Origin: Podarcis melisellensis
Taxonomy: Eukaryota
DNA length: 64,000 nucleotides
NCBI GenBank assembly: GCA_964234715.1
Contig: OZ174284.1
Direction: 5' to 3' (one strand)
Each line of letters opens with the position of its first letter. Position 1 is the first letter of the stretch. Made by a program: the position numbers and the translations under genes. The notes beneath the pieces are model-generated. The model was not told the origin of the DNA. It saw only the letters and a program-made list of their open reading frames with translations, and did no database searches. This document shows positions 31,001 to 58,489 of the stretch, in pieces.

Positions 31001-31208
31001 ATGCTTAAGTAATAGTGCGTACTGTGGCAGCCCAACATTCAAGCTTCATCTTGATTTATCATCATTGCCCCATTCTCTTGATAGGGAATCAGTGTTAAAT
31101 GCTTAGAGAACCACCATCTTTCACTAAAAACAGCATCTGTTTCTAACTTCAGCTTTTTATTTTCTATCTTTCATTTTCTTTTTTCTTTTTTGTTGATAAA
31201 TCTCCCAG

Positions 31209-31421
31209 ACAACAACAGTTCTGTAGAGAGTTTAAATATGAAGGAATGGCAGGACGGGCTAAGGGCACTTCTACCGAACATTAACATCAACTTTGGTGGA
31301 CTGCCCAATGCTACTTCCCCCTCCAACGCCAACCACAGTGTACCAACATCCAACACTGCCACCACCGACAGCCTGAATTGGGACAGCCCTGGCAGCTGGA
31401 TGGACCCCGCAATCATCACAG
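31209..31421 (+). CDS. CNOT4: CNOT4 symmetric cassette exon (71 codons)
   Basis: tcccag|ACAACA...ATCACAG|gtaaca; 213 nt, phase 1-1; DNNSSVESLNMKEWQDGLRALLPNININFGG...WMDPAIIT. Confidence 0.95.
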
Positions 31422-32127
31422 GTAACAATTTCTCGCTCCTTCAGCTCCACTGAGAATTACCAAGTGCATATTTTGCACAAATTAATCAATGCCTTTTTTC
31501 GAAAGAAAGAAAGAAAGAAAAAGCAACTCTATGCGGTGGTCTCTTCCAGCTTCCATCCACCAAACTTTCTAGAGGTTCAAGCATCTTTTTTTGGGGGGAA
31601 ACCAGGCATTAGCCCCCTCCATCCCAATATCCGTTGCATGTTCAGCGTCTTCCCAATACATCTTTAGACTTTAGTAGGTTGCCCTGTGATCTAATGGCTT
31701 GCCAGTTCTGTGCAATGAAATTCCTTAGGCACTGATACATTAACTGGACTCTTTTTCATTAAAAAGGAACATACTCCACTTGTTTATAAAGCTCTCTTAT
31801 AAGGCTATTTGTGTTTCCCTTTTAAAGGCTAAAGCATGATTTGGAAAAAGGTAGAGGAGCATATGGTATCTGGTAGAGCTAGATTGTGAATAAATCTCTG
31901 GACGAATGTTGTAGAAAGTGTGAAAAGTTCTCCAAGGGGCAAATGTTTCTTGTGAAAGCTCAACTACTGTTTTGTCTGGAACACTGTTATAACAGTCCTT
32001 TGTACCAACTAATAATGTTTTCTTACCATTGCCATTGGTTAGGTTTAAGCTGACCTACTTCACATTTGAAGTTCTTGCTTGCTCTGACTTAACCTCTTTC
32101 TCCTCCTATGTTTTCTCTTCTTCCTAG

Positions 32128-32429
32128 GTATCCCAGCCTCCGCTGGAAACAGTTTAGACACCCTTCAAGACGACAATCCACCTCACTGGCTAAAATCTCT
32201 TCAGGCTCTCACAGAGATGGATGGCCCCAGTGCTGCCCCGACACAGACCCCCCACAGTAACCCCTTCAGCACACAGATTCCTCTGCACAGAGCCAGTTGG
32301 AATCCTTACTCCCCACCTTCAAACCCCGCCAGTTTTCACTCTCCTCCCCCAGGCTTCCAGACAGCTTTCAGACCCCCCAGTAAAACCCCCACAGATCTAC
32401 TACAGAGCTCAGCGCTGGATCGTCATTAG
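32128..32429 (+). CDS. CNOT4: CNOT4 terminal coding exon
   Basis: ttcctag|GTATCC; GIPASAGNSLDTLQDDNPPHWLKSLQALTEMDGP...DLLQSSALDRH, stop TAG at 32427-32429. Confidence 0.96.
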
Positions 32430-37797: not shown

Positions 37798-37803
37798 TTT
37801 ATT
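37798..37803 (-). terminator. candidate poly(A) signal of the SUSD3-like gene
   Basis: First AATAAA I found on the - strand downstream of the stop at 38150 (about 350 nt). Confidence 0.4.
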
Positions 37804-38149: not shown

Positions 38150-38405
38150 TTATCTCGGATTCCAAAGTGCTGTCTTATTCAAAGGGTTCAGTCCTTCAGA
38201 TCTTCTGTAATAAACAGAAGGCAAGGCTTGGGGGAGATTGTGATGGCAAGGTTTCACATTCAAGGGGGCGTCTCCTGGTTTCTGAAGCAAATGAACAAAC
38301 ATCGAGGCAGATGGGGCAGTTCCTGGCTTCAGAACAACCTGCGGGAAGATGTGGATTTCGGAGCATAAGCTTTGCGGTGCCCATTTCTGCAGATTCTCCT
38401 GGCTC
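38150..38405 (-). CDS. SUSD3-like gene, exon 5 (terminal; cytoplasmic tail)
   Basis: Acceptor ttttactgtgttccatttctaatag|G; phase 2 joins exon 4 to give GFQ-R-SQENLQKWAPQ...ALWNPR, stop at 38152-38150. Confidence 0.75.
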
Positions 38406-38608
38406 CTATTAGAAATGGAACACAGTAAAAGAGATGGTGAGAGGTGTTGGGCAGTAATCAAAATCACTCTGAACAAAATGTTCTAAGACTAAAGGGCCAC
38501 TGGAACATAGTGATCATGCTTTTGTGACATTATGAATTTCACTCTCTCCAGTCTGTGAAAGTGTCATTTGCTGCTTAGAAGGACATTTGAATCACCTGCT
38601 GTGTGGAT

Positions 38609-38725
38609 CACAGAATTGTATAGTTGGAAGGGACCCTGCGGATCATCTAGTCCTGCGATGCAGGAATATGCATCTGTCTCATATGAGAATCGAACCTGCC
38701 AGCTTGGTGTTCTCAGCACTGTGCT
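38609..38725 (-). mobile_element. short tRNA-head / CR1-tail SINE
   Basis: CR1-like 3' end (agaattgtatagttggaagggacc) fused to a reversed B box (atcgaacc); followed by a palindromic MITE remnant to about 38830. Confidence 0.55.
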
Positions 38726-39711
38726 TTAGTCCTCCAGATGTTGGACTTCACCTTTCATCATCCCTCGCCCTTGGCTGTACCAGCTGCGGCTGGTGGGAGT
38801 TGGAGTCCTACAACATCTGGAAGGATCCCCTTACTCTCATCTGGCGAATCCCTCCTACATATTCAAAACCTTGGTTAAGACACAGAGAAGAGGATCAAGC
38901 CATGCCATATCCTAGATAGCTGCTTTTCCAGCTATGTAGCTCAAAAGAAGAAGTGCTTTTAGTATTGGGAGCTTGGCATGATTTAACTGATTTTATATAA
39001 TTTTAGCTGTGCCCCATTTGTTGATATTGTTGGTCTGTGTGCTGTGGGTAAACAGGGATCAACACTGTTCCCATAAGATTTCCTGGCTATTGTGCCAGGC
39101 ACTCTCAAAACCTCCTGAGAGCACCCTTCTGTATAATAGGTCCCTCGCAATACAGCTGAACAGTGAATAGGTGAAATTACAAGAAAAGTAGCCTTCTACA
39201 ATATTATTCTGAGGGTTATGATAACTGAAGAGCCCTCAGCAGTCATAGAAGGTTTAAGCCAATATGCTCCTCTTCATCTTCTGGGCAAGACTGAGACAGA
39301 ACTTGTCTATCTGTCTTTCTGTGTCTATATGCAAGGAAATATTTCTCTCTCTTTTTTTTAAACAACCCTGAAATGTTTAACAAATCTGGTTACAGTTTAG
39401 CATGCACTGAATTATGTCAAACATTAAAGAGTTGTTTCAGCTAGCAGTGCTCCAGCTGTGGACTAGTTACCAAACAACCCATCCTTTTAAGCAATGATTT
39501 CTTGGATAAGGCAAGAACAGTCACTTGGATTTAGATGGAAGAAGAATTTTCTTTGAGTTATACCAACCATGGTCTGGAGAAAAGAAAGTCAAAGGCATTA
39601 CTTGCTTCTGATAATTTGGAATAGAATTAAAGTAATAATATTCTCATTGATATCTCCCATGGAAGGATCTTAAATATTGGACAAAGACTAGGAAGAACAC
39701 CTACTTTCAAG

Positions 39712-39763
39712 ATAGAATCATAGAGTTGGAAGAGACCACAAGGGCCATCGAGTCCAACCTCCT
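39712..39763 (-). mobile_element. very short 5'-truncated CR1 3' end
   Basis: atagaatcatagagttggaagagaccacaagggccatcgagtccaacc, identical to the end of the 56094 CR1. Confidence 0.8.
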
Positions 39764-40461
39764 GATAATCCCATCACTTGATTCCTTCATGGTCAGTCTC
39801 TAGAATGAACAACTGCCGAAGATTGTTTTCTGAAATTTTAATTGGCACTTCTTTTCTACATCAATATGGTAATACAAGACAAGGTTTGAAAAACTTCAGC
39901 AGGTCAGATAGATTAAACTTGTCTACTTGAGAAAATACAGTAGAGACAGGCCTGGGCTGAGTGAAGGAGTCCTTAGTAGATCCAAGAGGGACTCTTATTA
40001 GGATTGTAATGCTTTGTAGTGGATAAAGGAAGGGGAGTGAGTACAGCATTAATTGGTGATAGTAGCTTTCAACATGCAGAGCAGTTTCACCAATGCAGTG
40101 TAAGCTTCTAGGCAAGATAGGGTAAACACTTGTATATTACATCCCACCCCCCACTAAAATGAAATGCACTCCCACAAAAGTCAGCCAATGTTTGCACGAA
40201 ATGTCCATGTGTGCACGCACACGCACACTCCAGCTCACCATACTAGGAAAGACTGGCTAGGCGACCTGTTTGCGCCCTGCTGTGTAGGGGCTGGATCCTG
40301 TTCTCCCTTCTTATGGTTCTTCATTCTTAAACCAGGTTGAGACCAGACAGCCCATCAGATGGTTCACTGCCAGCCCTCCAAATAGCCTGCTGTGCTCTGT
40401 AAGTGGAGCCCACGGCCATCCTAAGGGGAAGAATTGACTGCAGGGTAGAGGCATGGAATAC

Positions 40462-40644
40462 CTTTGGAATCCTTGGTTACTGCATCCTGCCAGAGCCCCA
40501 GGGTATGCGCAACTGTAGAGGGCAGAGGTGCGATATTGAAGCCTGCGATTCTGCTTCATTTTCCCAAAGCGAGTCCTGCTTTTCCCCATCTCCTGTTTAG
40601 CTGAGTTTCCTCTCCCAACTTTGAATTTCCTTCTCGGTCGTTGC
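40462..40644 (-). CDS. SUSD3-like gene, exon 4 (basic cytoplasmic segment)
   Basis: Acceptor attttctcatattccag|G, donor AG|gtattc; 183 nt, phase 2-2, open: QRPRRKFKVGRGNSAKQEMGKSRTRFGKMKQNRRLQYRTSALYSCAYPGALAGCSNQGFQ. Confidence 0.75.
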
Positions 40645-41620
40645 CTGGAATATGAGAAAATGTGCTACATTTGTCCTAGTTTATCAAGGTATTCACTACG
40701 TTTACAATGGCAACATATATTTCAGGACAGGAGAGGTTACTGGATCAGGCCAGTGGCCTGTTTAGTCCAGCATCCTGTCTTTCGGGTGCCTGTCCTGCAG
40801 ATTCTAGCCCTTTCCTTCAGTTGGATATCAATACCATCACTGAAATGTTCTTCTTGTTAAAATGTCCTTTCCAGAAGAGTGAATAAATGAAAACAAAAGG
40901 TTTCCTTCCCTTTGCTATGATGTAATCAAGCTTCAGAGTCTATTTAACAGCATTAAGCTCCTAAGAGGGGTTTTTGTGGTGGGACATTTAATTGGTTCTT
41001 TCAAAGTGGAGTTTCGTTTGGAAAATCCTGCTAGTCCGGTTCCCCCCCCCCCAAAAAAATGGATGCCTTCCCTCAGTAGTACACCTAAAAGAGAAAAGTC
41101 TATGTGGGTTATGAGGTATATCTTTATCGCTTCTACTAAACCAGAGGAGGCTTGGGCTGTTTTAACAATATGGCAATGTGTGCTGCAGAAGAAGGTCCCT
41201 GGGTGCCCTTTTTCAATACTACTTTAGCGTTTGCTTTCACAAAATGACTAGTAAGATTTTTCTGCCCCGTAGAATTTGAACACACACAGGCAAATGCAAA
41301 ACTACAATGCAGATGCCAAAAAAATTACAATTAATTAGAAAGAAGTGACAGATTGGTGGGTGTAAACAACAGAGTTGTTAAACAAACAAACAAACAAACA
41401 AACACCCCCACGTTTTCCCTTTAGGTGGGAAATGGCTTCCATCAGGCCTTGTTATGAGTTCTGTCAGTGAATGAGAAAGTATTTGGAGACCCCCAAATTA
41501 TGAAATGTAGTAAAAACACAAAAGCAGTCTTTAAATCTATACCATGTCTGACAGCAAGTAGTTGACGCTGTGTGCTTAGGCAACAGCATATTCCAGTCCT
41601 TCACTTTTACACCGTTTCTG

Positions 41621-41828
41621 TCATAGAATCGTAGAGTTGGAAGGGATTTCAAGAGTCATCAAACCCAACCCTCTGCAATGCAGGAATCTCAACTAATGCA
41701 TCCCTGACAGATGGCCATCCAACCTCTGCTTAAAACCTCCAATGAAAGTGAGTCCACCGTATTCTGAGGGAGTCTGTTTCACTGTTAAACAGCTCTTACT
41801 GCCAGAAAGTTCTTCCTGATGTTTAGTC
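41621..41828 (-). mobile_element. CR1 LINE 3' fragment
   Basis: tcatagaatcgtagagttggaaggg tail and acagctcttactgccagaaagttcttcctgatg, homologous to 56094-56300. Confidence 0.85.
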
Positions 41829-42302
41829 ATTCTGCATTCACGTATGTGTGTGGGGGGGATGACTTTCATACTCTCAATGTGGGGATTATAGTTTGGAGTG
41901 TGTGGCTTTTGGTTTACTCCTCTTGTGGTACAGGAAACAACAACATAAAGCCGATTTGTCTACCACCTGGCCCTGCCTTCACCTGCCTAGGGCCTACCTG
42001 CTGTTTTGGACCACATTTCCCATCAGCTCCTGCTAACCCATCTTCAAATTAGAGAAGGTTTTAGATTTGACCCCTTGGCCTGCAGATGGCAGCACTAGCT
42101 TAGTAATTTGCTCAGTAACTCAGAAGAAGTTTGATGCAGGAGAAATATACGATAAAATGCACCCCTCTCACGGTGTAACACTTTGCAATGCAAGAGAAAA
42201 AGTGATTGAGAGTAGCAATGGAACTACAACAGAATCTAGAATTTTCCCAGGCTTATGGTCATATTCAATACAGCACTAAAGTGAACATTCCCCCAGTGCA
42301 TA

Positions 42303-42543
42303 CACTGGTGGAGGAAGAGGGATGCGGGGGGAGCGTCACACCCCCGGTAGTGCAATCCCGGTGGGGTGCCATTGCTGCTCCCCTCCCACTGGGCACCACA
42401 CCCCCACAGACGGGACACCACACCCCCAGGATGTGCACCACGCCCCTGGGATGCGCGCCAGCCATGGCCCCGTCTGCTCTCCATGCCCCCGCCTGCTCTC
42501 CATGCCCCCCCCCCCCGCGCCAGAATATGAAGCTCCACCACTG
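42303..42543. mobile_element. GC-rich hAT/Tip100-like MITE
   Basis: TIRs cactggtggag / ctccaccactg; sharp GC-rich island; degenerate 8-bp flanks. Confidence 0.7.
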
Positions 42544-42642
42544 AGTCCAGGGTGTGTGCAGAGGAAAGAGATCGGGGAATCTTGTGCTAGTGCAGAAAAA
42601 AATATATTTGACTACTGCCCTTAGTGTTTTAAGGCTGCTGAA

Positions 42643-42742
42643 ATCATAGAATCATAGAATTGTGGAGTTGGAAGGGACCTCAAGGGTCATTTAGTACAAC
42701 CCCCTGGAATACAGGATTCTCAGCTAAAGCATCCATGACAGA
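42643..42742 (-). mobile_element. CR1 3' end fragment
   Basis: atcatagaatcatagaat octamer tail plus gagttggaagggacc. Confidence 0.8.
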
Positions 42743-43497
42743 AAATAGAGCACAACATTCTTGCCATGACACACACTCTCTCTCTGTATATATATCCTTT
42801 GCAAATACCTCATTCTACCAGAGATGTGATGGGTTTGGTTAATATGAGACCCTTCTCTGTGAGTACTACAAACAAACTACAGGGAGGAACCAGAGGTGTT
42901 ATATTGGCACAGTGACTGAGTCTATTAGAGCATACATGCATAGTATTCAGGAAAAGGGTAAGCACTTGAATGATATATTTTGATGGTTGTACATTTATAT
43001 AGCTGTCTCATAGGGAACATATAACCATCAAGGACTATGTATATTTTCTCAGAAGGAAGTCCTACTGTACTTAGTGGGATTTATTATGCCCATAAAGGTG
43101 GGATAGGAAGCCAAGAGCAGTGTGGTGCTGCTCTAATACTCCTAATCCATATGGCAAATCTTGCAAGGGATTGAGAAGAGCAAACATGTAGATTGTAGAG
43201 ACTCATTTTAAAACTGGGCTCCATTTCTTAACCAGCAGAGGGAGCTTCATTCTATACACACCATAATACGCTGGACAAATGCTTAAATAAATGTCCTGCC
43301 AAAAGCCTATTGCACTGGATCCAGCCTCGTTGGTTGCAGAAAGGGAACTTGCTTTTCACAGTCTACCCAAAACCCAAAGATACGTGTTCTTGGATGAGGG
43401 CCCAGCCCTGCCCCTTCCTCTCCCCAAGTCTGGAAAAAGTGTAGGAAGGGATGTGGGGCCCTTGCAACTGATCAAACTGCTTTGAATCACTGGAGTG

Positions 43498-43986
43498 CAT
43501 AGGCGCCGACTCCATGGGGCCTGAGGGGGCCCGAGCCCCCTCAAAAATTCGTTAGGGGGGGCTCCGCCCCCCCAATAATTTAAGAAAATTATTAGTTATA
43601 TTATGCTTTGTAAAATCACAAAATTATGTTGGTATTTTTTATTTTCCTTGTTTGACGATAGTTACCTTTTAAAATACATTCAGTAATGAGTTAAAACAAA
43701 GCCACTCCCGATCTAGAGAGGGGGTGGGGTTGTGGGCTCTCGACCCATCAACAATCTCGCGGGGATTCCCTCTAGCTCATTAATATTCACCGCCCACGGC
43801 GGCAGCCAATCGGCTGCCGCAAAGGGCGGGCGCTCACAGGTTCACTTAAGGTCGGGGCAGCCCGGGGGCTCGCCCCTTTCGTTCCCCCAGCAGCAGCGGT
43901 TTGGCGGTCTTGGGCCCCCCCAATATTTTTTATAAGTTGGTATGGGCCCCCGCCCCCCCAATATTTTTTATAAGTCGGCGCCCCTG
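43498..43986. mobile_element. young hAT/Tip100-like MITE with perfect 8-bp TSD
   Basis: TSD ctggagtg at 43490-43497 and 43987-43994; TIRs cataggcgccgact / agtcggcgcccctg; CpG-rich. Confidence 0.92.
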
Positions 43987-44553
43987 CTGGAGTGGTAAAA
44001 TAGCTCATGAAGCTGGACCTCAAAATGTAAGTGAGGGCTTGGCTCTGGAAACACCTGCTAGTTGGCTGCTGAATTCATCAGCCACCACCCTTGGGACTAC
44101 CTGCCACAAATATTATTTTTGCCGAATGGACTGTTTTTTGAACAAGCCAATCTGATCCCCAGACTTGCTCCCTTTCCTGAGCTCCTGTAGCTGCCAATGA
44201 TTACTCAACCAAGTTTCAGCCACCATCTTTCCTAATGTTCCCATGCATTCCTGCCATGCCATGCCATCGCATGTACATAATGCTTACCCAATTTAAGTAT
44301 GGAGCGCTTTCTTATGGGCACATGCCAACGGAACGGGTTAGCAGTGGATTCCCTCAGAAGCAACAATCAAAGGGTGCAAGGGCACAATTAATGGGGGAGA
44401 TATGGAAGAGGGGCCCCAGTCATTGGGAAAGGAGAGAACCATCTGTGCCAAATTTTGCTCATTTGAGAGAGGAAGGGAGTTAATTTTAATAAGCTATTGA
44501 GGATCAGGAGTTGGATGAATGAACCTAACCAGAGATATCCAAGTTAGCAATCA

Positions 44554-44556
<3 letters not shown>

Positions 44557-44599
<43 letters not shown>
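44557..44599. repeat. (TA)n microsatellite
   Basis: Directly visible. Confidence 0.95.
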
Positions 44600-44603
<4 letters not shown>

Positions 44604-44714
44604 ACACCTGCCCCTGACAAATTTGTGTTTTCCTACTTAGAGATACTGCAGGGCACAGATGAGGGGAAAATGGGTGGTGTAAGAATAGCTACTTTGCTGC
44701 TTTGGGGCAAAGTA

Positions 44715-44915
44715 CAGTGGTACCTCGGGTTACAGACGCTTCAGGTTACAGACTCCGCTAACTCAGATATAGTACCTCAGGTTAAGAACTTTGCTTCAGG
44801 ATGAGAACAGAAATTGCGCAGCGGCTGGAGGCCCCATTAGCTAAATTGGTACCTCAGGTTAAGGTTTCATAAGGACCTCCAGAACGAATTAAGTTCTTAA
44901 CCTGAGGTACCACTG
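44715..44915 (+). mobile_element. Tc1/pogo (Tigger-like) MITE, family copy 1
   Basis: TA|cagtggtacctcgggtta ... taacctgaggtaccactg|TA. Confidence 0.9.
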
Positions 44916-45446
44916 TACGATATTCTCACAGGATCTTGGCATGCACGTGGGGAAAGTTACTGACAGCATGCAACTTCCATAGCCACAGTTTCCAGAGCTA
45001 AAAGACTTCACACTGAAAACATAATCTTCCCAGCGCAGTCAGATGCTTAAGAAACAAACATGTCTCCCTCTCACTAATAGTCAATGTGGTGCCCTCAATA
45101 TGTTGTTGCACCCCAACTTCCCAACCAGTTGTCAGGGAGAGGATGGCAGGAACTACACGGACAATTCCTGCTCTCTATAGGTTGATAAAGTCTAATAAGA
45201 GAGTTGTACCTATTACCTGCCTAGAGATTTTTCAGTGGGCTCTAATAAAAACATTGCCAATCTGAATGGAAAGCAGACTGAGGGCTAAGCTGCACTCCTT
45301 TCTTTAATTTGTTTGGCTCAGTCTTGGATATCTGGCCATTCCTCATCGAACAGCCTTAGTGGTGGAGTCATTTCTCACGTGAGGGCCTAATCATGGTGGT
45401 GAATGGGCCTGACTGAGGTTACAGGCGGAATCTAGTCAATACTTAC

Positions 45447-45603
45447 CCTCCTCCGGTGTCACTGCTTTGTTCTTTTGCCCTCAACATCCTGTCTTGCAGA
45501 CAACAAACAGCGAAGGAGATTGACATGGTAACAATGATCACTCCACTGATGAGAGAGGCGATTACTGCCACCCGGAAACCTTTGTCCAGGGGCTTTGGGA
45601 TCA
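45447..45603 (-). CDS. SUSD3-like gene, exon 3 (transmembrane helix)
   Basis: Acceptor tttgtttttgtcaccttag|TG, donor GG|gtaagt; 157 nt, phase 1-2; VIPKPLDKGFRVAVIASLISGVIIVTMSISFAVCCLQDRMLRAKEQSSDTGG resembles the SUSD3 TM ([27 protein letters not shown], from recall). Confidence 0.9.
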
Positions 45604-45834
45604 CTAAGGTGACAAAAACAAAGCATGCTTGTTATGAGTCACTGTAAATGGCATTAACTGAAGGGCACCTGGAATATTGCCAGTTCACTCCTTAGTTTTT
45701 CCATTTAGAATCTTTATTTTTGAGGAGAGATTGATCTGAAAAGATGCATACTTTCTTGATCCACATTTGAACAGCGCAATATTCTGTTCATACAAAGCCC
45801 AGCAATTCAGAAATAAGTTTAACCAGTAGCTTAC

Positions 45835-46023
45835 CTTCACAGTGAGGTGGGGGGTGACTCCAGTAAAAGATGCTTCCTTCTAGCAAACAGGTCAGTTTTC
45901 GTTTGCCCACAAGCTGATAGCCTTCTTTGCACCAGTATGTGACCACTGAACCCAGGGAGCTGCCAGAGCCTTCTTCGGTATAATAAAACCCATAGCTTGG
46001 AGGGAGGAGAGCTGTGCACTGAG
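45835..46023 (-). CDS. SUSD3-like gene, exon 2 (sushi/CCP domain)
   Basis: Acceptor ccctgtgtctgttgcag|CT, donor G|gtaagc; 189 nt, phase 1-1 as typical for CCP modules; QCTALLPPSYGFYYTEEGSGSSLGSVVTYWCKEGYQLVGKRKLTCLLEGSIFYWSHPPPHCE has 4 Cys plus the conserved W. Confidence 0.93.
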
Positions 46024-46189
46024 CTGCAACAGACACAGGGAAACTAAATATGGGTTATCTGAAGAACACATCTGTATGAATCAATGGCATTGGCAGCTCA
46101 GGTCTGCAAATGAGGTTCTGCAAAGTGACTTGTGCAGCAGCAGCTTTTGTCTGCATGGGAGCTGCTGTAATGTGATGGCATCACAAGAG

Positions 46190-46425
46190 GGTGAATTGAT
46201 GGAGGATAAGGCTATCAGTGACTACTAGTCATGATGGCTACATGCCAGCACCAGGATCAGATGCAGCGTGCCTTGAATGCTGGTTGCTGGAGAACAACAG
46301 GGGGAGAGGGCTGTTGTCCTCTTGTGTATCTGATTGGCTGCTCTGGTAAACTTTATGCTGGGTTAGATAGGTTTTTGAATCAGACTCAGGAAAGTGGCTC
46401 TTATAACTTGGTGCTTCTCATGTTG
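46190..46425 (+). mobile_element. degraded CR1-related 3' fragment
   Basis: atggaggataaggctatcagtgactactagtcatgatggcta ... atgctgggttagatagg, resembling an older reptilian CR1 3' end; approximate. Confidence 0.5.
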
Positions 46426-48441
46426 AATTGTATGTATGAAAGAAGGGTACTCCATTAAAAAAGTGGGTGTTTTGTATTGTTCAGCTGTGCAAACTGTCCA
46501 TCCTATAATAAGCAAAGCCAGATGTGTTGAATTTGTGCATTCAATCTCTTCTCTCCATACACCACATTTTAAAGCAAGGGATGGAAATCAGGGCAGATGG
46601 TAAGGTCTGAAGTGTTCCCAGGAAAATGCTGGTTTTTCATTATTGTACTTGCTGCCTCTTGAGGGTAAGTATGGTTCAGTGCTCATAAGAGGGTTAGCAA
46701 ATTCCTTCAGGCTGGAAACTAAGCAGTAAGTACGGATTTGGCATCCAGTGTAACTGGGACAACACAGTTCCTGTGTCTACTCAGAAGTAAGTCTCACTAA
46801 GTTCAATAGAATTTGCTCCTAGGTAAGTGTGTGTAGAATTGCAGTCTAAAACAACGGAACTGGCTGGCTTTGAAAATGTAGTGGTAAACAGCTCACCTAA
46901 GGCTAAATGCTTAGTTTCTCAAACTGGCATCCTTTTGCTAGGCTACTTGTTTGTCTCTACTGAGAGGCCATGGTTAGTTTGGGAAAAAGGCATAGACAGC
47001 CAGATCTCTGCAGAGGACCAGAAGAAAATTTGGCAAAGCTATGCCATGAAGGTAAATTTGCCTAGAGTTCATCTCAGTCCACATTAAAATTAGTGCACCA
47101 GAAGCACCTGCCACTTCTAAGGCTTGTTTGTTTGTTTATTAAATTTGTTTACTGCCCCATTCTCATAGATCCCAGGGAGGCTCACAGCATAAACTTCCTT
47201 CACTTTGGAGTTGGAGAAAACTTGGACCTCAAAGTTTACACTACAGCTTGTTGTAGAGCAGTCTGATGGACTCAGGCATACAATATTAACAAAATAATAC
47301 AGATAATTTGTCTCCCAATCACAAGCCTTTTCAACCAGACATACCTCATAACAGTAACAGCAACACTGGAGGCAGCAGGATTCAATAGGGTTTAGGGCGG
47401 TTCTCCAGTGGCATAAGTGAAGTACCAGGACCGTGTGATCAATGGCTTCTCTAAATCAGGTATCTTTAACATGTAATGGTTTCCATTCATTGCATTCATT
47501 AACAACAATTCATCAATATAAATATACACCTCTCATCATTTTTGGACTGGACATGTTTCTACATTGTGCATTGATTTCATTCTAATGTGGACAACATATT
47601 CGTGCCTACTCCTTTATAGTTTTTATGCCATTCTATTATACTTTGCTGATCTTTAAAAATCCTCTAAAAACACTTCAATAAACAGTTTTTAAATAAATAA
47701 ACATACTATGTATAGTGCAAGGGAGAGAGAGGGACCTGTTCACCAATTCCCCACTAAGTGCCCCCTTTCCCTGCAATTGCCTTACAGAGAAAACAACTAA
47801 AATCACGAATCCTAAGTTTTCCTCCTAAGATAATGTTATCCCCTTGGTACCAGCTCTGCTCCTCCCAAAATGTTTGTCAAACTACCAATATCCCCACCCC
47901 CCAGGAGGGGAGAAGATGTAATGATGCACAGTATAAAAGAAATATTTTTGCTCAAAAAAGAGAAGGAAATTCAAAGAACATCTAGAACATATGTGGATCA
48001 AGATCTTAGTTGAAGATGCCATAGTGTGCTTCCTAGTGAATTTGCACCATGCTTACAAAACAACACACTTGTACTTGACATTTACTAGCACAGAATAATT
48101 GCCACCACATCCCTCAACATTTATATGCACTAAAGTAGGTTAAATTCTTCATACCACTTATATGTGTGCATTGAGTCTGAGAGAAAAAAATCCATAGCTT
48201 TGATCCTCAGTGACGCTTAAGAGTTAACGTTGTGGTTTTTGTAGCAGTTAATATGACCGAGTGGTTAAACCGGGATGCTAAGGGGCAAGTAATGAGTGAC
48301 CTAGTAATGAGCCCCTTGAGCGATGGTAGGAAGAATACCCTTTTGATAGCAAGTTGTGTGTATTAGACACACAAGATGTGACTTTTGGCTGAAGATCTGA
48401 GGACACAAACACACACTTAAACACAAGACGTTTCAGAGTAC

Positions 48442-48619
48442 CTGAAAGGTTGCCTTGAACAATGGTCCCATTTCCAGCATCTCTAAGAAATTTCTTTACA
48501 CCAGCTTCCTCTGCAGGGATGGTGGTCAAGGATTCCAGAGCTTCACTCAAGGTAAACTCTAGGCAACTCCAGGCTAGTAGGCAGAGGGCTGCATGTTCCT
48601 GGGATGGTTGCTTCTTCAT
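48442..48619 (-). CDS. SUSD3-like gene, exon 1 (ATG, putative signal peptide, N-glycosylated stalk)
   Basis: ATG 48619 (G at -3); MKKQPSQEHAALCLLAWSCLEFTLSEALESLTTIPAEEAGVKKFLRDAGNGTIVQGNLS; donor G|gtactc gives the phase 1 needed by the sushi exon; NGT and NLS sequons; donor is weak. Confidence 0.62.
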
Positions 48620-48821
48620 ATCTTGAGGCTTTGCTGTGGCATCCTGGAGTTCTCCCAAGAATATTGAATGTATGTGTGCATGTTTTCCCCTTCTTCACTC
48701 AAAATCTGACCTGGCAGCAGTAAGCTGGATTTGAGGTCTTTAAGCCTTGAGGAGGAAAGCCTGTTTGTTCCCCAGAGACCAGCTGCCATTTCACCAAATC
48801 TTACAAGACTGAAGGAACCTA

Positions 48822-49059
48822 CAATGGTACCTTGGGTTAAGTACTTAATTCGTTCCGGAGGTCCGTTCTTAACCTGAAACCGTTCTTAACCTGAAGCACC
48901 ACTTTAGCTAATAGGGCCTCCTGTTGCCACCGTGCTGCCGGAACACGATTTTTGTTCTCATCCTGAAGCAAAGTTCTTAACCCGAGGTAATATTTCTGGG
49001 TTAGCGGAGTCTGTAACCTGAAGTGTATGTAACCTGAAGCATATGTAACCTGAGGTACC
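48822..49059 (-). mobile_element. Tc1/pogo MITE, family copy 2 (one end lost in a microsatellite)
   Basis: Reverse complement of the 44715 and 50803 elements; TA at 48820-48821. Confidence 0.88.
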
Positions 49060-49060
49060 T

Positions 49061-49127
<67 letters not shown>

Positions 49128-49128
49128 A
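49061..49128. repeat. (C)n(CT)n(CA)n compound microsatellite
   Basis: Directly visible. Confidence 0.95.
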
Positions 49129-49730
49129 AATATCTCTTTGAATTGTCTTCCTCTGCCCTCACCATGCATGTACATTCATTTTTTCTTGCATGCTCCCCCC
49201 CCCCCAAAGATAAAATACAATGATGTCCTGTTCCAGTGTTGGCTCAGTGACCAGTTTCTCCTATGGGGAAACCAGGGCTAATAAAAGTAAAGATGAATAC
49301 AGTGTGCATGCAAAACATTTGGGAGGCCTCTTATACATGCTAAATAGTGCTGGTGCTCTTATTCAAGATAAATCATCTGTAATGACTTCTCTGCATATAA
49401 GGAGTGTTAATGCCATAACTATAATTACTTCACTGTGGATTGCAGGGAGGCAAATGGATGGCCTTTCTGCAAGTATTCACTTTGCTTCTTTCCTTTCTCT
49501 GTCAGTGTATCATGCACGGCCATTTGTTTGTTTGTTCTCTTGTGTTTTTGTTCATTCTCAAAAATTTCAATGAGCATAAATGCATGTGTGAGAGAGACAG
49601 AGAGAGAGAGAGGGATGCTCTTCTGACAAATAGCCAGGTTGCCATGCTAAGCATGTTTGGGTGTGTTAGAAACCAGCCAGGTGAAGAAGCCATTGCTATT
49701 GCATTCTGTTGCTCCACAGGGTAGGGCCTG

Positions 49731-49991
49731 AATCAGTGGGTTCAAATTGCAAGTGGATTTCAGCTTAGCATTAGGAAGAACTTCCTGGCAGCTCAAGCCT
49801 GTTTGACAGTGGGACAGACGGCCTCAGGATGCATTGGACTCTATTTTTGTTAGAGGTTTTAAAGTGAAGACTGGATGGGCCCCCTGACATTTCAGGGGTG
49901 CAGTAGCAATGAGTATCCTTCATCAGCCACAGGGGCGGGGGTTGGACTAGGTTACTCTCGAGGTCCCTTCCGATTCTACAATTCTATTATC
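49731..49991 (+). mobile_element. CR1 LINE 3' fragment
   Basis: cattaggaagaacttcctg ... gttggactag ... ggtcccttccgattctacaattctat. Confidence 0.75.
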
Positions 49992-50802
49992 TTCTTTTTC
50001 TAGGGCGCTTCCTTACATGCATAACATCTGGCTGTGATGGAGTGGAGCCTCCTGGCCTGTTCTAAGCTGTAGCTGGCTGCCACAATGAGCGTTCTGATGA
50101 CTTTGCTCCCCCATGATTCACAGAGGTGGGGCAGCAGAAGGAGAAGGAAATGAAGGGCACTATAAAAGCTGCTTCTTCCTCCACATAGCAGGGCAAAGTC
50201 TAATGTTGGATTCTCCCTGCCCTGAAGCTAATGGGAAGGATGACAAGCAGACAGTAGCAATTCCAGAAAGTTTTTGCTTAGAGTGAATCAAGGGTTTAGC
50301 ACTGGGATCTGTTTTCTTCTAGGACTGAGACACGGCACGGAAGTGTGTCTCTGAGTGTGTAGTTTGGTAAGGAGGCCTTGCTTGTTGGAGAGTGCAACTT
50401 TCAGGCAGGATTGACGACCGGTTTTTCTAATTTTTGAGATGAAGCATTGCTGTTTTCTAAGCCCCGTGGATCTGACGGTTTCTCTGCCAAGCCTTGCTTT
50501 GGTGCTCCCACTGGGTTTTCACTTTTGGCCATGGGGAGGAGGAGAAAATAGGCTGGACACTTAGAATTTGCTAAAAAAAAGAGGAAATGCACCACCTACA
50601 AAGAAGATAAAAGTGGACCCAAATTGCATGAAAATTATACATTCCAATAAGTATATACACATGCAAGATTAGAAACAATTAGTAATTCACATAGAAATCC
50701 AATGGTGGGGAAGTTCAGTCCACTGCTAAGTGCCAACTGTTGATGGGCTACTTCAAAGTCCCTGCAGGTGGAAAGAGAAAGCTCAGGAGGCACTTCAAAG
50801 TA

Positions 50803-51028
50803 CAGTGGTACCTTGGGTTACAAACACTTCGGGTTACAGACTCCGCTAACCCAGAAGTAGTACCTTGGGTTAAGAACTTTACCTCAGGATGAGAACAGAA
50901 ATCGCACGGTGACTGCACATCGGCAGTGGGAGGCCCCATTAGCTAAAGTGGTACCTCAGGTTAAGAACAGTTTCAGGTTAAGAACGGACCTCCAGAATGA
51001 ATTAAGTTCATAACCAGAGATACCACAG
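50803..51028 (+). mobile_element. Tc1/pogo MITE, family copy 3
   Basis: TA|cagtggtaccttgggtta ... taaccagagataccacag|TA. Confidence 0.9.
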
Positions 51029-52484
51029 TATATTGAATATTTAGGTCATGTCTGAACTGAGCCACAGAGTGAAGCCATTTTATACCCATAATAATCCCAC
51101 TTTAAACAAAAACAACAACAGCAACCTTGGACAGCCCACTTATTTCTTAATTTATAGTGCCAGAGACACAAACTATCTGAGCAAGATGAGTCAGCACTTG
51201 TGACCCCTGTGTAAATGTGGTTTTAAAAATCCCTCCCCCGTGTCTGCTGGGTGTTGCTCCCCGCCAGATGATGCCCCTGGCTGTAATCAGAATTTGGGAG
51301 TTTCACTCCCTTCTGTTGCCCAATCTATACAGAAGCTATGGCTTCAACCTGCCCGTCACGTGTGCTTGTTGAGCTTGCTGATACCTTGCTTTCTGAGGAT
51401 TAGTCAAATGTGAACACAACAAGGACCAAGGGAGAAGCAGTCAGAGATGTGAAGCAATGGCACACGAGGAAGTTGCTGTTTGGCACCTCACTGTACTAGG
51501 CGAGGCAAGTAAATACTGGCAGTGAAATGTCACCAAATCGTTTCACCAGCTGATGGCATCTCACTGCCTGCTAGGCTATGGGAGAAAAAGTCCCCTGGCA
51601 TTAAAGTTGCCAGAAAACAGAGCACATGTTTCAATTAAGGTCTGTGCTGCAAAGCCATGGCTGAGTTGCATCACATGTTCAGAGAGTATCAGCCCAGCTA
51701 ACATTGAGTGACTCCAGTTACTGTTTTAGGCTGTGAAGTTGTAGTATTTTAGGCTGAAAATGCTGATTGGATAATCAGCGTGCATTTCCACCCTTTTAGA
51801 AATATTTTAAAGCAGCCAAGAGAATACAAAGGCTTGTTATTTTGGAATTAAGACTCAAAAGGCTCATGCCTGGCAATCTGCTTTTAGATTCCTGTTTTAT
51901 CAGCTCTGAGCCTAGCAAAATGTGGCTCAGAGATGTGGGTTCAGTCGGGGCGATCTGGCCTTGTATACAAATCTTGGAATGGCAGTGGCAGTGGAGCTTT
52001 TATAGAGTCCTCCCACCTATCTTATGTAATTTAACTGAATGACAGTGCAAAAAATATGTGTATGGCTGGATTAGGAAAGTGAACTAGCGAGTTGAACAAT
52101 CACATTTGGATTAGTTTTAACCACAGATATTTTAAAACTATTTTAATCCATGTATATTTATTAGATGGCCTCGTCACAGAATAAAGAAAACGAAATGGAT
52201 GTATCTAATGAAGCAAACCTGGCCTCTTACATAACTTTCCCCAGTATACCTTCCCTTTCCTGCTAGCTAATGCTTCCCTCCCTATTTCCACATTTGACAT
52301 CACATATCTTTTTCTTGAAAGCCTATATTCCCTGTGCTCAGGTGTGAGAGCCGTTGCTTGTGTAGCCCTCAATGCCCAAGAGAGAAGCAGTCCCAAGATC
52401 AGAAGAAGAAGTAGAAACTTTAGGGGGAAAGTATAAGGAGGTGAGACCCCTTCAAACAACCCAGTCATGACTGAGCATGCTCAG

Positions 52485-52579
52485 TGGTTGTGGAATGCTC
52501 CCATGGTTGTGGAATGCTCCCATGGTTGTGGAATGCTCCCATGGTTGTGGAATGCTCCCATGGTTGTGGAATGCTCCCA
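52485..52579. repeat. minisatellite, 5 perfect copies of the 19-mer TGGTTGTGGAATGCTCCCA
   Basis: Units start at 52485, 52504, 52523, 52542, 52561. Confidence 0.97.
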
Positions 52580-53284
52580 TGTCTATTTGCAGGGTGAGGC
52601 AGGTGGAGAGAAGAGAGTTGGAGTATCATAGAAAAGGGAATAAATAGGTCATGAGTGGAATGCTGAACAGAAGCATTCCACCTGGCAAATTTTTGTTGCA
52701 GGTCCCACTCATCCTTTCCTAAAAGCTTATTTGGTCATTGCTGCTCTTCTTCCATTGTGCGGTGTCTTCGCTTATTGGTTACAATGCTATGCTTCATTAA
52801 CAGACTTTTTCCTGATTCTCCCCCAGTGGGTTATATTTAACTGAATGGACTGAAGTTAGTACTGGCCTTTAATTTCAAGAGGTCTACCCTGAGTAGAATT
52901 CACATTAGATCCAACCCAGCAGCTCTTTTCCCCTAGTGAGGCCGGGTGCCCTTTGCTCTTCAACACTCTTTCTGCAAGCTCTGCAGCTGTTTGGTGACAA
53001 GCATGGAGCACGCACAGTAAGAGACCTGTTCCTTCCTATAATGCTCACTTGTGCTCTTTTGTTTCTGGAAAGAGAGGGGGGAAAGGAGCATAGCTTTGTG
53101 GTGGAGCCAAGTGAGACCCAAGTGATTTTGGGCAATGCCTGGACTTGAGGAAGAACCCTGCTAGAGAGTGTCGTGGGAGCCTTTGGCAGAACACACCATC
53201 TTGAACCAGTACAGACTGGAAGCCAAACTAGACAAGACGGTAGATGAGAGAGGGAAGAGGCAGTGAAGGTGAAGATGCATTAAT

Positions 53285-53800
53285 GGAAGAGCTGTAGCCC
53301 GGTGGTAGAGCATTTGCCTTGCATGTAGAAGGTCCCAAGTTCAATCCCCTGGTGCTGGAGGAGACTCTTGAGAGTCCCATAGACTGCAAGAAGATCAAAC
53401 CTATCCATTCTTAAGGAAATCAGCCCTGGAAGGACAGATCCTGAAGCTGAGGCTCCCATACTTTGGCCACCTCATGAGAAGAGAAGACTCCCTGGAAAAG
53501 ACCCTCATGTTGGGAAAGATGGAGGGCACAAGGAGAAGCGGACGACAGAGGACGAGATGGTTGGACAGTGTTCTCAAAGCTACCAGCATGAGTTTGACCA
53601 AACTGCGGGAGGCAGTGGAAGACAGGAGTGCCTGGCGTGCTCTGGTCCATGGGGTCACAAAGAGTCGGACACCACTAAACGACTAAACAAGAACATCTCC
53701 AGGTAGGACTGTGAGAGACCCTCACCAGAAAGCCTGGAGTGTAGACAAAACTGAACAAGATGGACCAATGGGATGACTTGGTACAAGGCTTCCTATGTTT
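53285..53800 (+). mobile_element. tRNA-derived SINE with CR1-like tail (Squam2-like), split by BovB
   Basis: Head gctgtagcccggtggtagagcatttgccttgcatgtagaaggtcccaagttcaatcccctgg (A and B boxes) resumes as catctccaggtagg at 53694; tail gatggaccaatgg...cttcctatgtt. Confidence 0.8.
53350..53693 (+). mobile_element. BovB (RTE) LINE 3' end, 5'-truncated
   Basis: ORF MRREDSLEKTLMLGKMEGTRRSGRQRTRWLDSV...WRALVHGVTKSRT is the BovB ORF C-terminus; short CAA-like tail. Confidence 0.93.
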
Positions 53801-54982
53801 TTAAGAATAATTGGAGGATTTTTTAACCCTTTCCTGCCTGTGCTCTCTGTGAAAATGGGTCCTTCCCCTAGCTGGATTATTAGGGGAAGTGTACATTCAC
53901 ACCTACTTACATTGGTGTGAAACAGTTTCATATGTGCTGCTGCTTCCATTTGACCATTTCACTTTGCTGGTCCGTCCTGCTTTAGCTGAGCGCCTGCCTC
54001 CTAACTTGCATGGAATGTGTGACATGGGCAAGCCACAGAAAAATGTGGAGCAAGCTGCTTCCCTCTTTTATTGCAGGTTAAGTAGTATAGATATATCTTC
54101 CTCAGCCCATCCCATGTGTAAACAAGCCAGAATCTTCTTTAATCTTCCATAGTGTTTTCCCACCTCCCCTCTTCCTTTTGTCCCCTCCTTTGTTGTATCG
54201 GTGCCACCTACACCCACGTACAAATCGCCTGGTGTTGACATCCTGGCAGCTCTTCAATTTATTCTTGTGCTCCAGCCCAGAGCAGTTTCAATGACGCCAA
54301 AAAGCATAAGCCCTGGAGGAGAGCAGCTACCTCTGTGACTCGCATCTCAGCGGACCAAAGAACAGCTGGGCAGAGAACTGTCTGAAAAGCTCAGGTACCC
54401 TTTAACTCTTCATAGACGGATAGATAGATCATCCCAAGAGGAAATGCACAATCCTTCAGTCCCTGCTCCGAAGCTTTTCTGCCTGCTTGGCTGTCGTGAA
54501 CTGACAGGTAGTGGGAACAGGTAGCACTAAGACAGGACAAAAGAGCCCTTTGAGGAATCTGGCTCCTGTTGCTGTAGAGGTGCAGGTCAAGCTGCTAAGC
54601 TATTATGACAAACCCAGGATGATTGATAGCACCTTCTGGGGTCTGGCCTAACAGACAGAGGGACAAGTTAGCAACAAAGCTCAGTAGGAGAATAAAAGGA
54701 TTGGCGTTGCAGGTACTAAGTTAGAGTTGCCTTCTGCTTGCTTTTGTGGGTTTGCTACATTCCCTGAGTTTGATCAAAAGGATTTTGAGAGCTAGCTATG
54801 GAAATAGGCAGGTGGGAAAATAGGAATCCAAGGCAGTTTTACTTAAAACTAGGAATGGAGTGTAATGAATGTACCCCATAGCAGATAAACACAAAAGTAG
54901 CACAAAGTTAACATGATCAAGTGTAGCACATAACTAGCTTTTCAGATGCTATGAAGTGAACTTCTTTGACTGGACTTCAGAA

Positions 54983-55014
<32 letters not shown>

Positions 55015-55020
55015 CACACA
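54983..55020. repeat. (TG)n(CG)n(CA)n microsatellite
   Basis: Directly visible. Confidence 0.9.
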
Positions 55021-56093
55021 CAGTCAAACCAGAAAAGAACTATTTATATATCTGCATTAGCATCATGATACCTTTGAAGCACACTGTGGCAGCCCCCCTT
55101 TAGACTGCTAACTCACGAATTAGTGGTGGAAGTGGGGGTAACTCAGCAACAAGGTAAAATCTCCTTATGGACCAACTTGAATTAGCATAAGCAGGATTTC
55201 AGATTTCCTTATCCCTGGCTAATTCAGCGTATAGCATTACACAAGTCTGCATTTTTGTTTTCTAGGAACAGTTGGTCTGCTGATAGGTATATTAGGGGGA
55301 AAGCATTAAAAGTAATGAATTGCTGGTTTGTTTGTTTGGGGTTCTTTTATTTTAAAAAAAAGGCCTTCACCCTGCCCTCATTTGATTAATGGTATAGCCT
55401 GCCGAATTACATGCAATGTTGACATGAGATGGTCTGCTGATGTTCTTCCTAAGTGCCATGCACTTTACATGGTCAAACAACACCAAAGTAAAAAGGAACT
55501 CCAGCTAATTAAGCTTTCTTCACAAGCAGATGCTGGCAGGGTTGTGCTTTCATGACTCAGTCCACAGAGAAACACCAAAAAGTTTTGCACGTCGCACTGG
55601 TTAAATAATGCCCTTAAGACTTTAGCGATCCTTTTAAAAAAAGTATACCTTCTTGTTTTGGAATTTCAGATGCAAGAGTGCTTTGAAATATTTAGTGCTT
55701 CCTATTAAGTGCAGTGGGAAGGCAGGGAGCACTACATCATTTACTTTCTTTTGGATGAGAGAGTATTGGCAACTTTCTAATACAGTTCCATCATTTTGAG
55801 TCAAAGCTGCAAATTGAGTATGAGAAAATTAAACCTAGTGGCTTTTGTCTAAGACGTCCATTTTATTCTGAGATAGGACGCAGTATCTTAGAGGATAAAG
55901 TTTTTGCCTTCTATTCAGTAGACCTGGTTTCACAATTTTGGTCTAGTATTAATGACACATTAGATGATCCTGGAGAAACCACAATATACTCTGTTTCCCA
56001 TCTATAAAATGGGAAGAACAATAAAATAATGAGGCTGAGCAAGCGGTAATGAGGAAGAGCATAAGATAATAGCATATGAAGTGGTGTAAATAC

Positions 56094-57095
56094 CATAGAA
56101 TCATAGAGTTGGAAGAGACCACAAGGGCCATCGAGTCCAACCCCCTGCCAAGCAGGAAACACCATCAGAGCACTCCTGACATATGGTTGTCAAGCCTCTG
56201 CTTAAAGACCTCCAAAGAAGGAGACTCCACCACACTCCTTGGCAGCAAATTCCACTGTCGAACAGCTCTTACTGTCAGGAAGTTCTTCCTAATGTTTAGG
56301 TGGAATCTTCTTTCTTGTAGTTTGGATCCATTGCTCCGTGTCCGCTTCTCTGGAGCAGCAGAAAACAACCTTTCTCCCTCCTCTATGTGACATCCTTTTA
56401 TATATTTGAACATGGCTATCATATCACCCCTTAACCTCCTCTTCTCCAGGCTAAACATGCCCAGCTCCCTTAGCCGTTCCTCATAAGGCATTGTTTCCAG
56501 GCCTTTGACCATTTTGGTTGCCCTCCTCTGGACACGTTCCAGTTTGTCAGTGTCCTTCTTGAACTGTGGTGCCCAGAACTGGACACAGTACTCCAGGTGA
56601 GGTCTGACCAGAGCAGAATACAGTGGCACTATTACTTCCCTTGATCTAGATGCTATACTCCTATTGATGCAGCCCAGAATTGCATTGGCTTTTTTAGCTG
56701 CCGCGTCACACTTGGCTCATGTCAAGTTTGTGGTCAACCAAGACTCCTAGATCCTTTTCACACGTACTGCTCTCAAGCCAGGTGTCACCCATCTTGTATT
56801 TGTGCCTCTCATTTTTTTTTGCCCAAGTGCAATACATTTAAAATTCATCTTGTTTGTTTTGGCCCAGTTCTCTAATCTGTCAAGGTCGTTTTGAAGTGTG
56901 ATCCTGTCCTCTGGGGTGTTAGCCACCCCTCCCAGTTTGGTGTCATCTGCAAATTTGATCAGGATGCCCTTGAGTCCATCATCCAAGTCGTTGATAAAGA
57001 TGTTGAATAAGACTGGGCCCAAGACAGAACCCTGTGGCACCCCACTAGTCACTCTTCTCCAGGATGAAGAGGAACCATTGATGAGCACCCTTTGG
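56094..57095 (-). mobile_element. young CR1 LINE, 3' about 1 kb with RT C-terminus, frameshifted
   Basis: [22 protein letters not shown]...[10 protein letters not shown] and [19 protein letters not shown] in broken ORFs; (TTCTATGA) tail at 56094. Confidence 0.96.
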
Positions 57096-58428
57096 TGCTA
57101 CCAAAAGCAGTGAATGCACTGCTACTACTTTATTAAAGAAAATATAGTATAAAAAGACCCTGGGCAAACGTCTACAAATGCACCATTCAGGTAGCCAGAA
57201 ATTTAAGGAAACTGCAGCAACTATTTTATATATTTTATATTTTATATCATGCTATTTTTAATCTATTCTTTTTATAAATATCCTATAACAGTTCCAATAG
57301 GTTTTTTTACCTACTTGATCATCTATTGTGATGCTTAGCTCTTTCATTCATTTTCCTATTCCTTTTGTGACCTTTAATTTTCTCTAGAGTTAAATTCCAT
57401 ATGACTAAAGAATCTGTTCTATTCCCTGGATTACTCACTCATCTCTCTATGTGGGGTGACCACAACTTCACACAGGTGCAAAGTTATCAGTGCATGATTG
57501 ATTTATGCAATAATATTTAACTTTGGCCTTGTTGCTGGCAATAACTAACCTACCTCACAAGGTGTTTGTTCAGATATAATGTAAATGAAGTGGAAGATAA
57601 AAATGCAAGGAACTTTCTGTGTGTGTATTTGTCCATCTCTTCTTCCTAGTACTGAAGATCCTGTTTCTTTTTAGAGCTACAGTGCATCAGACTGATTTAA
57701 AATCAAATCAATTCCAGAGTGACTTAAGAACTCTTTGTTTGCATGTAACAGTTGATTTTGAATCTAATGTTGGGTGCACACAAATAAACAACATTTTCTT
57801 GGAAGGAAAAGGCAGTCTGCCATGTTTGTGTCTCTCAAGTGAATTACCTTTTATTCCTCTGCAAGAGAATTAATCTAGAGAAGCTGCAAAACTCAAATCT
57901 AGTTTATGACAGCCAGCCATGAAGTCTGAATCTGATGGGCCAGAGGCAGGTGGGGTGGCTGTGAAAGGGCTGGAAGAGTCAAGCAAGAACAGTAGAGGGT
58001 CAACAACAGAAGGTGTAGGCTGAAGATTTATTGTAATTAAAGCATACAAATTTTATAAACAGATATATAAACAGATTTTATATAGGTATAGTTTTAATTC
58101 TGTTAAAGTTTAACTGTACTAAATTTTTCAAAATGTTTATAGCCAGTCTTTGTTTTTAGCTGTAAGCTGCCTTAAGTTCCAACAGGGAAAAAGGCAGGGT
58201 ATAAATAAATATATAATAATATATATCAGATTGGACAGATGAGTTGGACTTGTAACAAAATGTTATTTGTGTGGAGTGCTCTTCTTCAGGTTTCTAGCTA
58301 CTTCATTCTATTCCCTGCCACCCCCCACTGCTGTTTCTTCCTCTCTAATAGTCATTCTGCATTCCATGCAAGCTGAGCATGCTCACTCCTCATGGGGCTG
58401 TTTTAGGGATCCTTCCCCTGTTAAATTT

Positions 58429-58430
<2 letters not shown>

Positions 58431-58489
<59 letters not shown>
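58431..58489. repeat. (AAT)n microsatellite
   Basis: About 19 units, directly visible. Confidence 0.95.

Follow-up and report, generated by a model that had tools for sequence, protein, structure and literature searches.

A 64,000-nucleotide stretch of the Podarcis melisellensis genome (assembly GCA_964234715.1, contig OZ174284.1; hereafter the window, meaning the whole stretch that was analysed) carries on its minus strand, from position 48619 down to 38150, a five-exon gene for a SUSD3-like membrane protein. On the evidence of tree, synteny and tail sequence this gene is a SUSD3-family paralogue and not a SUSD3 orthologue; it is intact, and all five exons are under purifying selection. Its identity as the intact lacertid orthologue of a SUSD3 sister gene that is ancient in vertebrates, together with the history that this entails, is considered highly probable. 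A broader interpretation is judged likely, namely that the gene represents an undescribed sister of SUSD3 that is at least as old as the bony-vertebrate ancestor, has persisted in ray-finned fish, the coelacanth and all sauropsids for over 400 million years and retained conserved tail motifs of its own, was apparently lost in mammals and perhaps in amphibians, and encodes an unstudied surface receptor or adaptor. The gene cannot be called new, since RefSeq and UniProt already contain the LOC144328981/zgc:162331 group, to which it belongs as the lacertid orthologue. A first-pass annotation of the window, made from the sequence, had called it a probable uncharacterised paralogue; the paralogy stands, while the gene turns out to have been annotated before as RefSeq LOC144328981/zgc:162331. 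No paper was found under the fish names zgc:162331 or si:ch211-242e8.1 in the literature searched, which did not extend to supplementary files, and to our knowledge the claim of an ancient SUSD3 sister gene that has no mammalian copy is absent from that literature.

Separation from SUSD3

Relatives of the gene were reached through the exon 2 open reading frame (ORF), which retrieved one protein, a 127-residue P. muralis fragment in UniProt (97% identity). That fragment led to partial gecko and turtle models covering exons 1-3 and 3-5 with identical junctions, and a profile of these relatives and the window exon peptides matched 155 proteins, the best 120 of which are listed and underlie all statements on hits made here. 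Searches and translation of the window gene were carried out exon by exon, and the P. muralis product P0157, the top profile match ('uncharacterized protein LOC144328981 [Podarcis muralis]', RefSeq), served as its full-length stand-in. All five window exons match all six sauropsid members compared, and full-length orthologues with identical exon junctions are found in P. muralis, Anolis, Caretta, Alligator, ostrich and pigeon. Further annotated orthologues are detected in Lacerta, Anolis (LOC134299592), Varanus, Pogona, geckos, turtles, alligator and about 30 birds and, among fish, in sturgeon, bowfin, many teleosts (zgc:162331) and the coelacanth. Mammalian SUSD3 proteins appear far lower among the listed matches (E 1e-25 to 1e-20), alongside lungfish and moray-eel proteins, and the upper group holds no mammalian or amphibian member among the annotated proteins listed, as distinct from searched genomes. 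The earlier view that the gene was retained in reptiles and lost in mammals is thus upheld as regards the mammals, among these listed matches, and proves too narrow as regards its retention, which extends to birds, crocodilians, turtles, the coelacanth and ray-finned fish.

A careful tree was built from 43 proteins, comprising those of nine mammals, the lungfish Protopterus, the moray Gymnothorax, Latimeria, 15 ray-finned fish and 16 sauropsids, in which true SUSD3 is defined as the mammalian, Protopterus and Gymnothorax sequences. A single branch with 100/100 support divides true SUSD3 from Latimeria, the ray-finned fish and the sauropsids, and P0157 is placed with the latter. The identical split was recovered in a quick tree with 98 rows. 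Three clades would not by themselves be sufficient to show duplication; what is informative is that one teleost and a lungfish join mammalian SUSD3 while other teleosts, including another eel, join the sauropsid genes. As both subfamilies are represented in ray-finned fish, the two separated before ray-finned and lobe-finned vertebrates diverged, and the pair of sister genes may stem from the early vertebrate genome duplications. The approximately unbiased (AU) test rejects a clade uniting mammals and sauropsids (difference in log likelihood, delta lnL, 91.5; p 1.9e-9). A tree that groups the moray sequence with the remaining ray-finned fish genes is likewise rejected (delta lnL 117; p 2.7e-68).

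Comparison of individual exons gives a similar picture. Resemblance to SUSD3 is found in exons 2 and 3, with best identities of 39% and 54%, respectively; exon 3 matches all 11 true SUSD3 proteins at E <1e-3 and shares 18 of 28 residues (64%) with the membrane span of lungfish SUSD3, which agrees with the very similar transmembrane segment mentioned in the first-pass annotation. Exon 2 is 54% identical to a fish orthologue versus 34-39% to true SUSD3. No similarity to true SUSD3 was detected for exons 1, 4 and 5, and neither exon 4 nor exon 5 has a match below E 1e-3 across the 11 proteins. Intron positions are common to the two subfamilies, and the five-exon layout is shared by moray SUSD3 and the fish, quail and P. 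muralis genes, which implies that the copy arose by DNA duplication and excludes an origin as a retrocopy.

The two genes also occupy different genomic surroundings, the neighbour of the window gene being CNOT4 and not the FGD3/CARD19/NINJ1 neighbourhood of true SUSD3. In human, SUSD3 is the immediate neighbour of FGD3 at 9q22.31 (PMC7446538), and chicken SUSD3 is located at 6.84 Mb on chicken chromosome 12 (GGA12), beside NINJ1, WNK2 and FAM120A (PMC13560938; PMC11636908). In the moray (Gymnothorax javanicus), CARD19 is the next gene downstream of SUSD3 and on the same strand; no neighbouring gene was found within the 10-kb flanks of a bat SUSD3 locus. Because chicken SUSD3 is on GGA12 and the CNOT4-linked gene of quail is on a 184-Mb chromosome, both genes can be placed, at two loci, in galliforms. 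Tree, AU tests and synteny therefore bear out the paralogy that the first-pass annotation had proposed and for which it had suggested a tree, and its statements that CNOT4 lies tail-to-tail with the gene in the window (Table 1) and that human SUSD3 lies near FGD3 are likewise accurate.

These lines of evidence decide against the closest competing explanation, in which the window gene is simply the lizard SUSD3 orthologue, a single gene that was relocated beside CNOT4 in sauropsids and whose mammalian copy evolves fast. The resemblance of exons 2 and 3 to SUSD3 would fit this explanation, as would the choice of several annotators to name the group 'SUSD3' and the lack of any sauropsid true-SUSD3 protein among the 120 listed matches. 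However, the rejection of a clade of mammals and sauropsids, the grouping of a teleost and a lungfish with mammalian SUSD3, the CARD19 neighbour in the moray, the position of chicken SUSD3 beside NINJ1 on GGA12 and the unrelated tails all contradict it, such that it has already been largely refuted and is regarded as very unlikely.

Several points nevertheless weigh against interpretation of the gene as an ancient sister of SUSD3 that mammals have lost. The groups compared in the AU tests were chosen after the first tree was known, and the true-SUSD3 clade contains only two non-mammalian sequences, both long-branched, with the composition of the Protopterus sequence being odd. That this lizard has two genes would be an extrapolation from chicken and quail, and the lack of mammalian and amphibian copies is drawn from the annotated proteins in the 120 matches listed out of 155. 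Expression in lizards is predicted from RefSeq models, an isoform in Lacerta and one spliced fish contig.

The encoded protein

A Pfam search of all five exons places one Sushi domain (PF00084) in exon 2 (E 4.5e-10, profile positions 1-56 of 56) and confines the match to that exon, so that the ectodomain contains a single complement control protein (CCP) module; exons 1, 3, 4 and 5 have no Pfam match at the gathering score. Matches of exon 3 to YkpC, BAMBI_C and TMIE were rejected, being below cut-offs and reflecting only the similarity of hydrophobic helices, and an atlas look-alike search with the exon 3 peptide returned only low-score bacterial membrane peptides. Exon 1 probably opens with a signal peptide, MKKQPSQEHAALCLLAWSCLEFTLSEA, the cleavage of which is presumed from reading the sequence, and two N-glycosylation sequons (NGT and NLS) can be read in the same exon. 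The membrane span in exon 3 reads ...VAVIASLISGVIIVTMSISFAVCCL / RVAVIASLISGVIIVTMSISFAV and is preceded by a short stalk, IPKPLDKGF, and followed by a juxtamembrane CC. Beyond it extends a cytoplasmic tail of approximately 160 residues. The single sushi domain, the membrane span ending in CC and the long tail of the first-pass annotation were all recovered.

Conserved motifs are distributed along the tail. Exon 4 ends in the motif YPGALAGCSNQGFQ, which is common to turtle and sturgeon (sturgeon E 4e-5), and exon 5 contains RSQENL, LCSEIHIFPQVVL, PSAS and YYRR, its tail sequence matching the sturgeon orthologue (E 6e-9). Expressed as patterns, N-x-G-[FY]-Q-R-S-Q-E-x-L, [FY]-P-x-V-V-L and P-[ST]-A-[SP] have been kept from sturgeon and teleosts to lizards. 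In the AlphaFold2 (AF2) model of the P. muralis orthologue, which has a mean predicted local distance difference test (pLDDT) score of 54.6 and was used for coarse statements only, the membrane span is the sole high-confidence helix (pLDDT 90-94), the CCP is beta-rich with moderate confidence, and the tail is disordered save for one short helix.

The sushi domain also raises the question of whether the product could be a complement regulator of the regulators of complement activation (RCA) type, its sushi domain binding C3b or C4b as in CD46, CD55 and CR1. RCA regulators bind C3b or C4b with three to four tandem CCPs. The closest solved structures to exon 2 are indeed ordinary CCP modules of CR1, CR2, DAF, Crry and CD46, but the scores against PDB entries represent generic CCP similarity summed over repeats; in a HMMER library search with the exon 2 peptide, giant multi-sushi proteins likewise fill all 150 listed rows by virtue of summed scores. 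With only one CCP, SUSD3 as the nearest family by whole-protein search and a locus that is not an RCA cluster, a complement-regulatory role of this kind is highly improbable.

The product of the sister gene would instead be a type I single-pass plasma-membrane glycoprotein from which the signal peptide is removed. Its one glycosylated CCP would be exposed outside the cell as a protein-recognition module, the CC beside the membrane is a likely palmitoylation site, and the mostly disordered tail may recruit cytoplasmic partners via the N-x-G-[FY]-Q-R-S-Q-E, [FY]-P-x-V-V-L and Y-Y-R motifs. In a passage of PMC7446538 that cites the work of others, SUSD3 is tied to oestrogen-dependent proliferation, adhesion and migration in MCF-7 cells. 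By analogy, an adhesion or cytoskeletal-signalling role at the cell surface can be tentatively suggested as the best guess for the window gene, with its different cytoplasmic tail implying cytoplasmic partners different from those of SUSD3.

Locus, gene structure and integrity

CNOT4 adjoins the gene tail-to-tail not only in the window but also in P. muralis, Anolis and king quail. In the window, about 5.7 kb separate the end of CNOT4 from the stop codon of the SUSD3-like gene, and both 3' untranslated regions converge within this gap. On its other side the CNOT4-linked gene of king quail is flanked by an SLC23-type permease, whereas tblastx comparison with quail detected no SLC23-type gene upstream in window positions 48701-64000, i.e., none within 15 kb. 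The sole tblastx match between the upstream regions of window and quail is a fragment of a CR1-type long interspersed nuclear element (LINE) that both share. In fish the surroundings are different: in Betta and Anguilla the gene is arranged head-to-head with an SLC13-type transporter, and in bowfin it adjoins an SSB-domain gene. Human SLC13A4, SSBP1 and CNOT4 are presumably all located in 7q33-q34, which provides a lead rather than a test. The CARD19 (BinCARD) gene next to moray SUSD3 encodes 184 residues, is without a Pfam record and is unnamed in the assembly. Long simple repeats are present in the window at 58340-58410 and 2100-2200; one trinucleotide run reads as poly-Asn or poly-Tyr depending on the strand, and TC and CA dinucleotide runs occur in the CNOT4 introns.

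Table 1. Coordinates of the gene, its neighbours and related features (window positions unless a moray locus is indicated)
Feature	Position	Strand	Remarks
Exon 1	48619-48442 (178 nt)	minus	ATG 48619-48617; ends in phase 1; 96.6% identity to P. muralis P0157 residues 19-77
Exon 2	46023-45835 (189 nt)	minus	Phase 1-1; one complete sushi/CCP domain; 98.4% identity to P0157
Exon 3	45603-45447 (157 nt)	minus	Stalk, membrane span, CC and start of basic tail; ends in phase 2; 94.1% identity to P0157
Exon 4	40644-40462 (183 nt)	minus	Basic cytoplasmic segment; phase 2-2; 98.3% identity to P0157
Exon 5	38405-38150 (256 nt)	minus	C-terminal cytoplasmic tail; TAA 38152-38150; 96.4% identity to P0157
First AATAAA after stop	37798..37803	minus	347 nt from stop; candidate polyadenylation signal by pattern match only
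CNOT4 coding exons	2276-2509, 13275-13760, 31190-31453, 32217-32429	plus	Last exon ends ...LLQSSALDRH and stop at 32429
CR1-type LINE reverse transcriptase fragment, two ORFs	56165-57088	minus	Same repeat family in quail locus
Moray CARD19 ORFs	L002 23597-23926 and 26105-26350	plus	Match Bcl10-interacting CARD structure PDB 4dwn, E 4e-9 and 2e-8

A young, sauropsid-specific duplicate of SUSD3 might be suspected given that the gene was noticed here in a reptile and that NCBI labels the bird and gecko copies 'SUSD3-like'. The ray-finned fish and coelacanth genes that group with the window gene and have tail motifs in common with it, as well as the SLC13-type and SSB-domain neighbours of the fish copies, argue against so recent an origin, the probability of which is put at very little.

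The structure of the window gene is as the first-pass annotation had given it, which is to say that its five exons from 48619 to 38150, their GT/AG ends, the phases 1,1,2,2 and the 320 codons are exact. Translated exon by exon, the five minus-strand exons are free of stops, each in its own frame; the codons split at the junctions are GCT (A), GTG (V), GGG (G) and AGG (R), and the 320 codons are followed by TAA, with a stop at no junction. All four acceptors are AG behind pyrimidine-rich tracts and all four donors are GT (gtac, gtaa, gtaa and gtat). There are no runs of N in the window. Upstream of the ATG at 48619 there is an in-frame TGA with no further ATG in between, and the Anolis, Caretta, Alligator and ostrich orthologues begin at this same conserved codon. 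P. muralis P0157 (338 residues) has its start 18 codons before this one, at an ATG for which the window has ATA. This single A/G difference (window 48671-48673 versus P. muralis L006 10001-10003) makes the 18-residue N-terminal extension impossible in P. melisellensis, where an in-frame TGA lies slightly upstream of the ATA.

Exon 4, at 183 nt, can be skipped with the frame preserved, and isoform X2 of Lacerta agilis (P0167) lacks exactly this exon, which suggests that exon 4 is a cassette exon and that its skipping takes out the basic segment together with the YPGALAGCSNQGFQ motif. Intron 2 (window 45604-45834) is about 230 nt long versus about 730 nt in P. muralis (L006 13092-13823), an insertion or deletion of roughly 500 bp between these close relatives, and the part of intron 3 at 42200-42630 shows the lowest conservation relative to P. 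muralis, at 84% identity. The latter stretch is GC-rich, contains overlapping 100-residue ORFs on both strands that are rich in Pro, Gly and His, and is probably a repeat or CpG-rich element.

Divergence from P. muralis amounts to 2.2% in the exons, compared with about 4-16% in the non-coding DNA around them, where individual blastn blocks align at 84-96% identity. The ratio of non-synonymous to synonymous substitution rates (dN/dS) is 0.32 against P. muralis, where 10 of the changes are synonymous and 11 are not. In the comparison with Anolis, dS is 0.76 and dN is 0.12, giving a dN/dS of 0.16, and each exon individually has a value of 0.17-0.30; for exon 5 the ratio of the proportions of non-synonymous and synonymous differences (pN/pS) is 0.17. 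The check on dN/dS that the first-pass annotation had put forward thus yielded a value far from 1. The observation is far beyond chance: each of the five exons has a counterpart in annotated orthologues, and purifying selection acts on every one. P0227, a fish member of the group, has 297 residues and is encoded on a Logan contig of 2009 bases, so that it derives from a spliced transcript. A decaying or non-functional locus, whether a chance ORF or a recent pseudogene, is therefore exceedingly improbable in view of the intact frame, the canonical splice sites, the dN/dS of 0.16, exons more conserved than the surrounding non-coding DNA and tail motifs preserved from sturgeon to lizard, with the low mean pLDDT of the AF2 model and the lack of expression data for the species being all that would speak for it.

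Significance and relation to known systems

The orthologue group is currently recorded under at least five names, encompassing 'SUSD3', 'SUSD3-like', zgc:162331, si:ch211-242e8.1, 'uncharacterized LOC' and 'stress response protein nst1'. The Varanus, Acipenser and Chanos members are annotated 'SUSD3', and the Labeo rohita gene is listed under two names. Results on 'SUSD3' from expression or genome-wide association studies in fish, birds and reptiles may as a consequence refer to either gene, and if the interpretation presented here is true, much of the fish and reptile 'SUSD3' annotation points to the wrong gene. It would also follow that mammals, which apparently keep one member of this ancient pair of paralogues, either did without the function of the other or passed it to another protein. 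The membrane protein could be studied in zebrafish or chicken. Gene loss in mammals is common and a model of the gene is already public, and the finding therefore tidies the record rather than changing the field, and would not surprise a specialist.

Among known systems, the orthologue group (LOC144328981, LOC134299592, the bird and gecko 'SUSD3-like' genes and zgc:162331) represents the same gene, the window exons matching P. muralis at 94-98%, with the upstream start of the P. muralis model as one difference. SUSD3 resembles it in having a single sushi domain on a phase 1-1 exon, a very similar stalk and membrane span with the signature GF[RK]VAVIAS...CCL directly after the CCP, five exons and probably the same topology. 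It differs in forming a separate clade, in its FGD3/CARD19/NINJ1 rather than CNOT4 neighbours, in exons 1, 4 and 5, which show no detectable similarity, and in being present in mammals, a mammalian copy of the window gene not being among the listed hits. The RCA regulators CD46, CD55 and Crry are likewise type I or membrane-anchored proteins and have CCP modules that align to exon 2; however, they possess several tandem CCPs and are encoded in the RCA cluster, whereas in the window gene one CCP is combined with a membrane span of the SUSD3 type and with a long tail that is unrelated.

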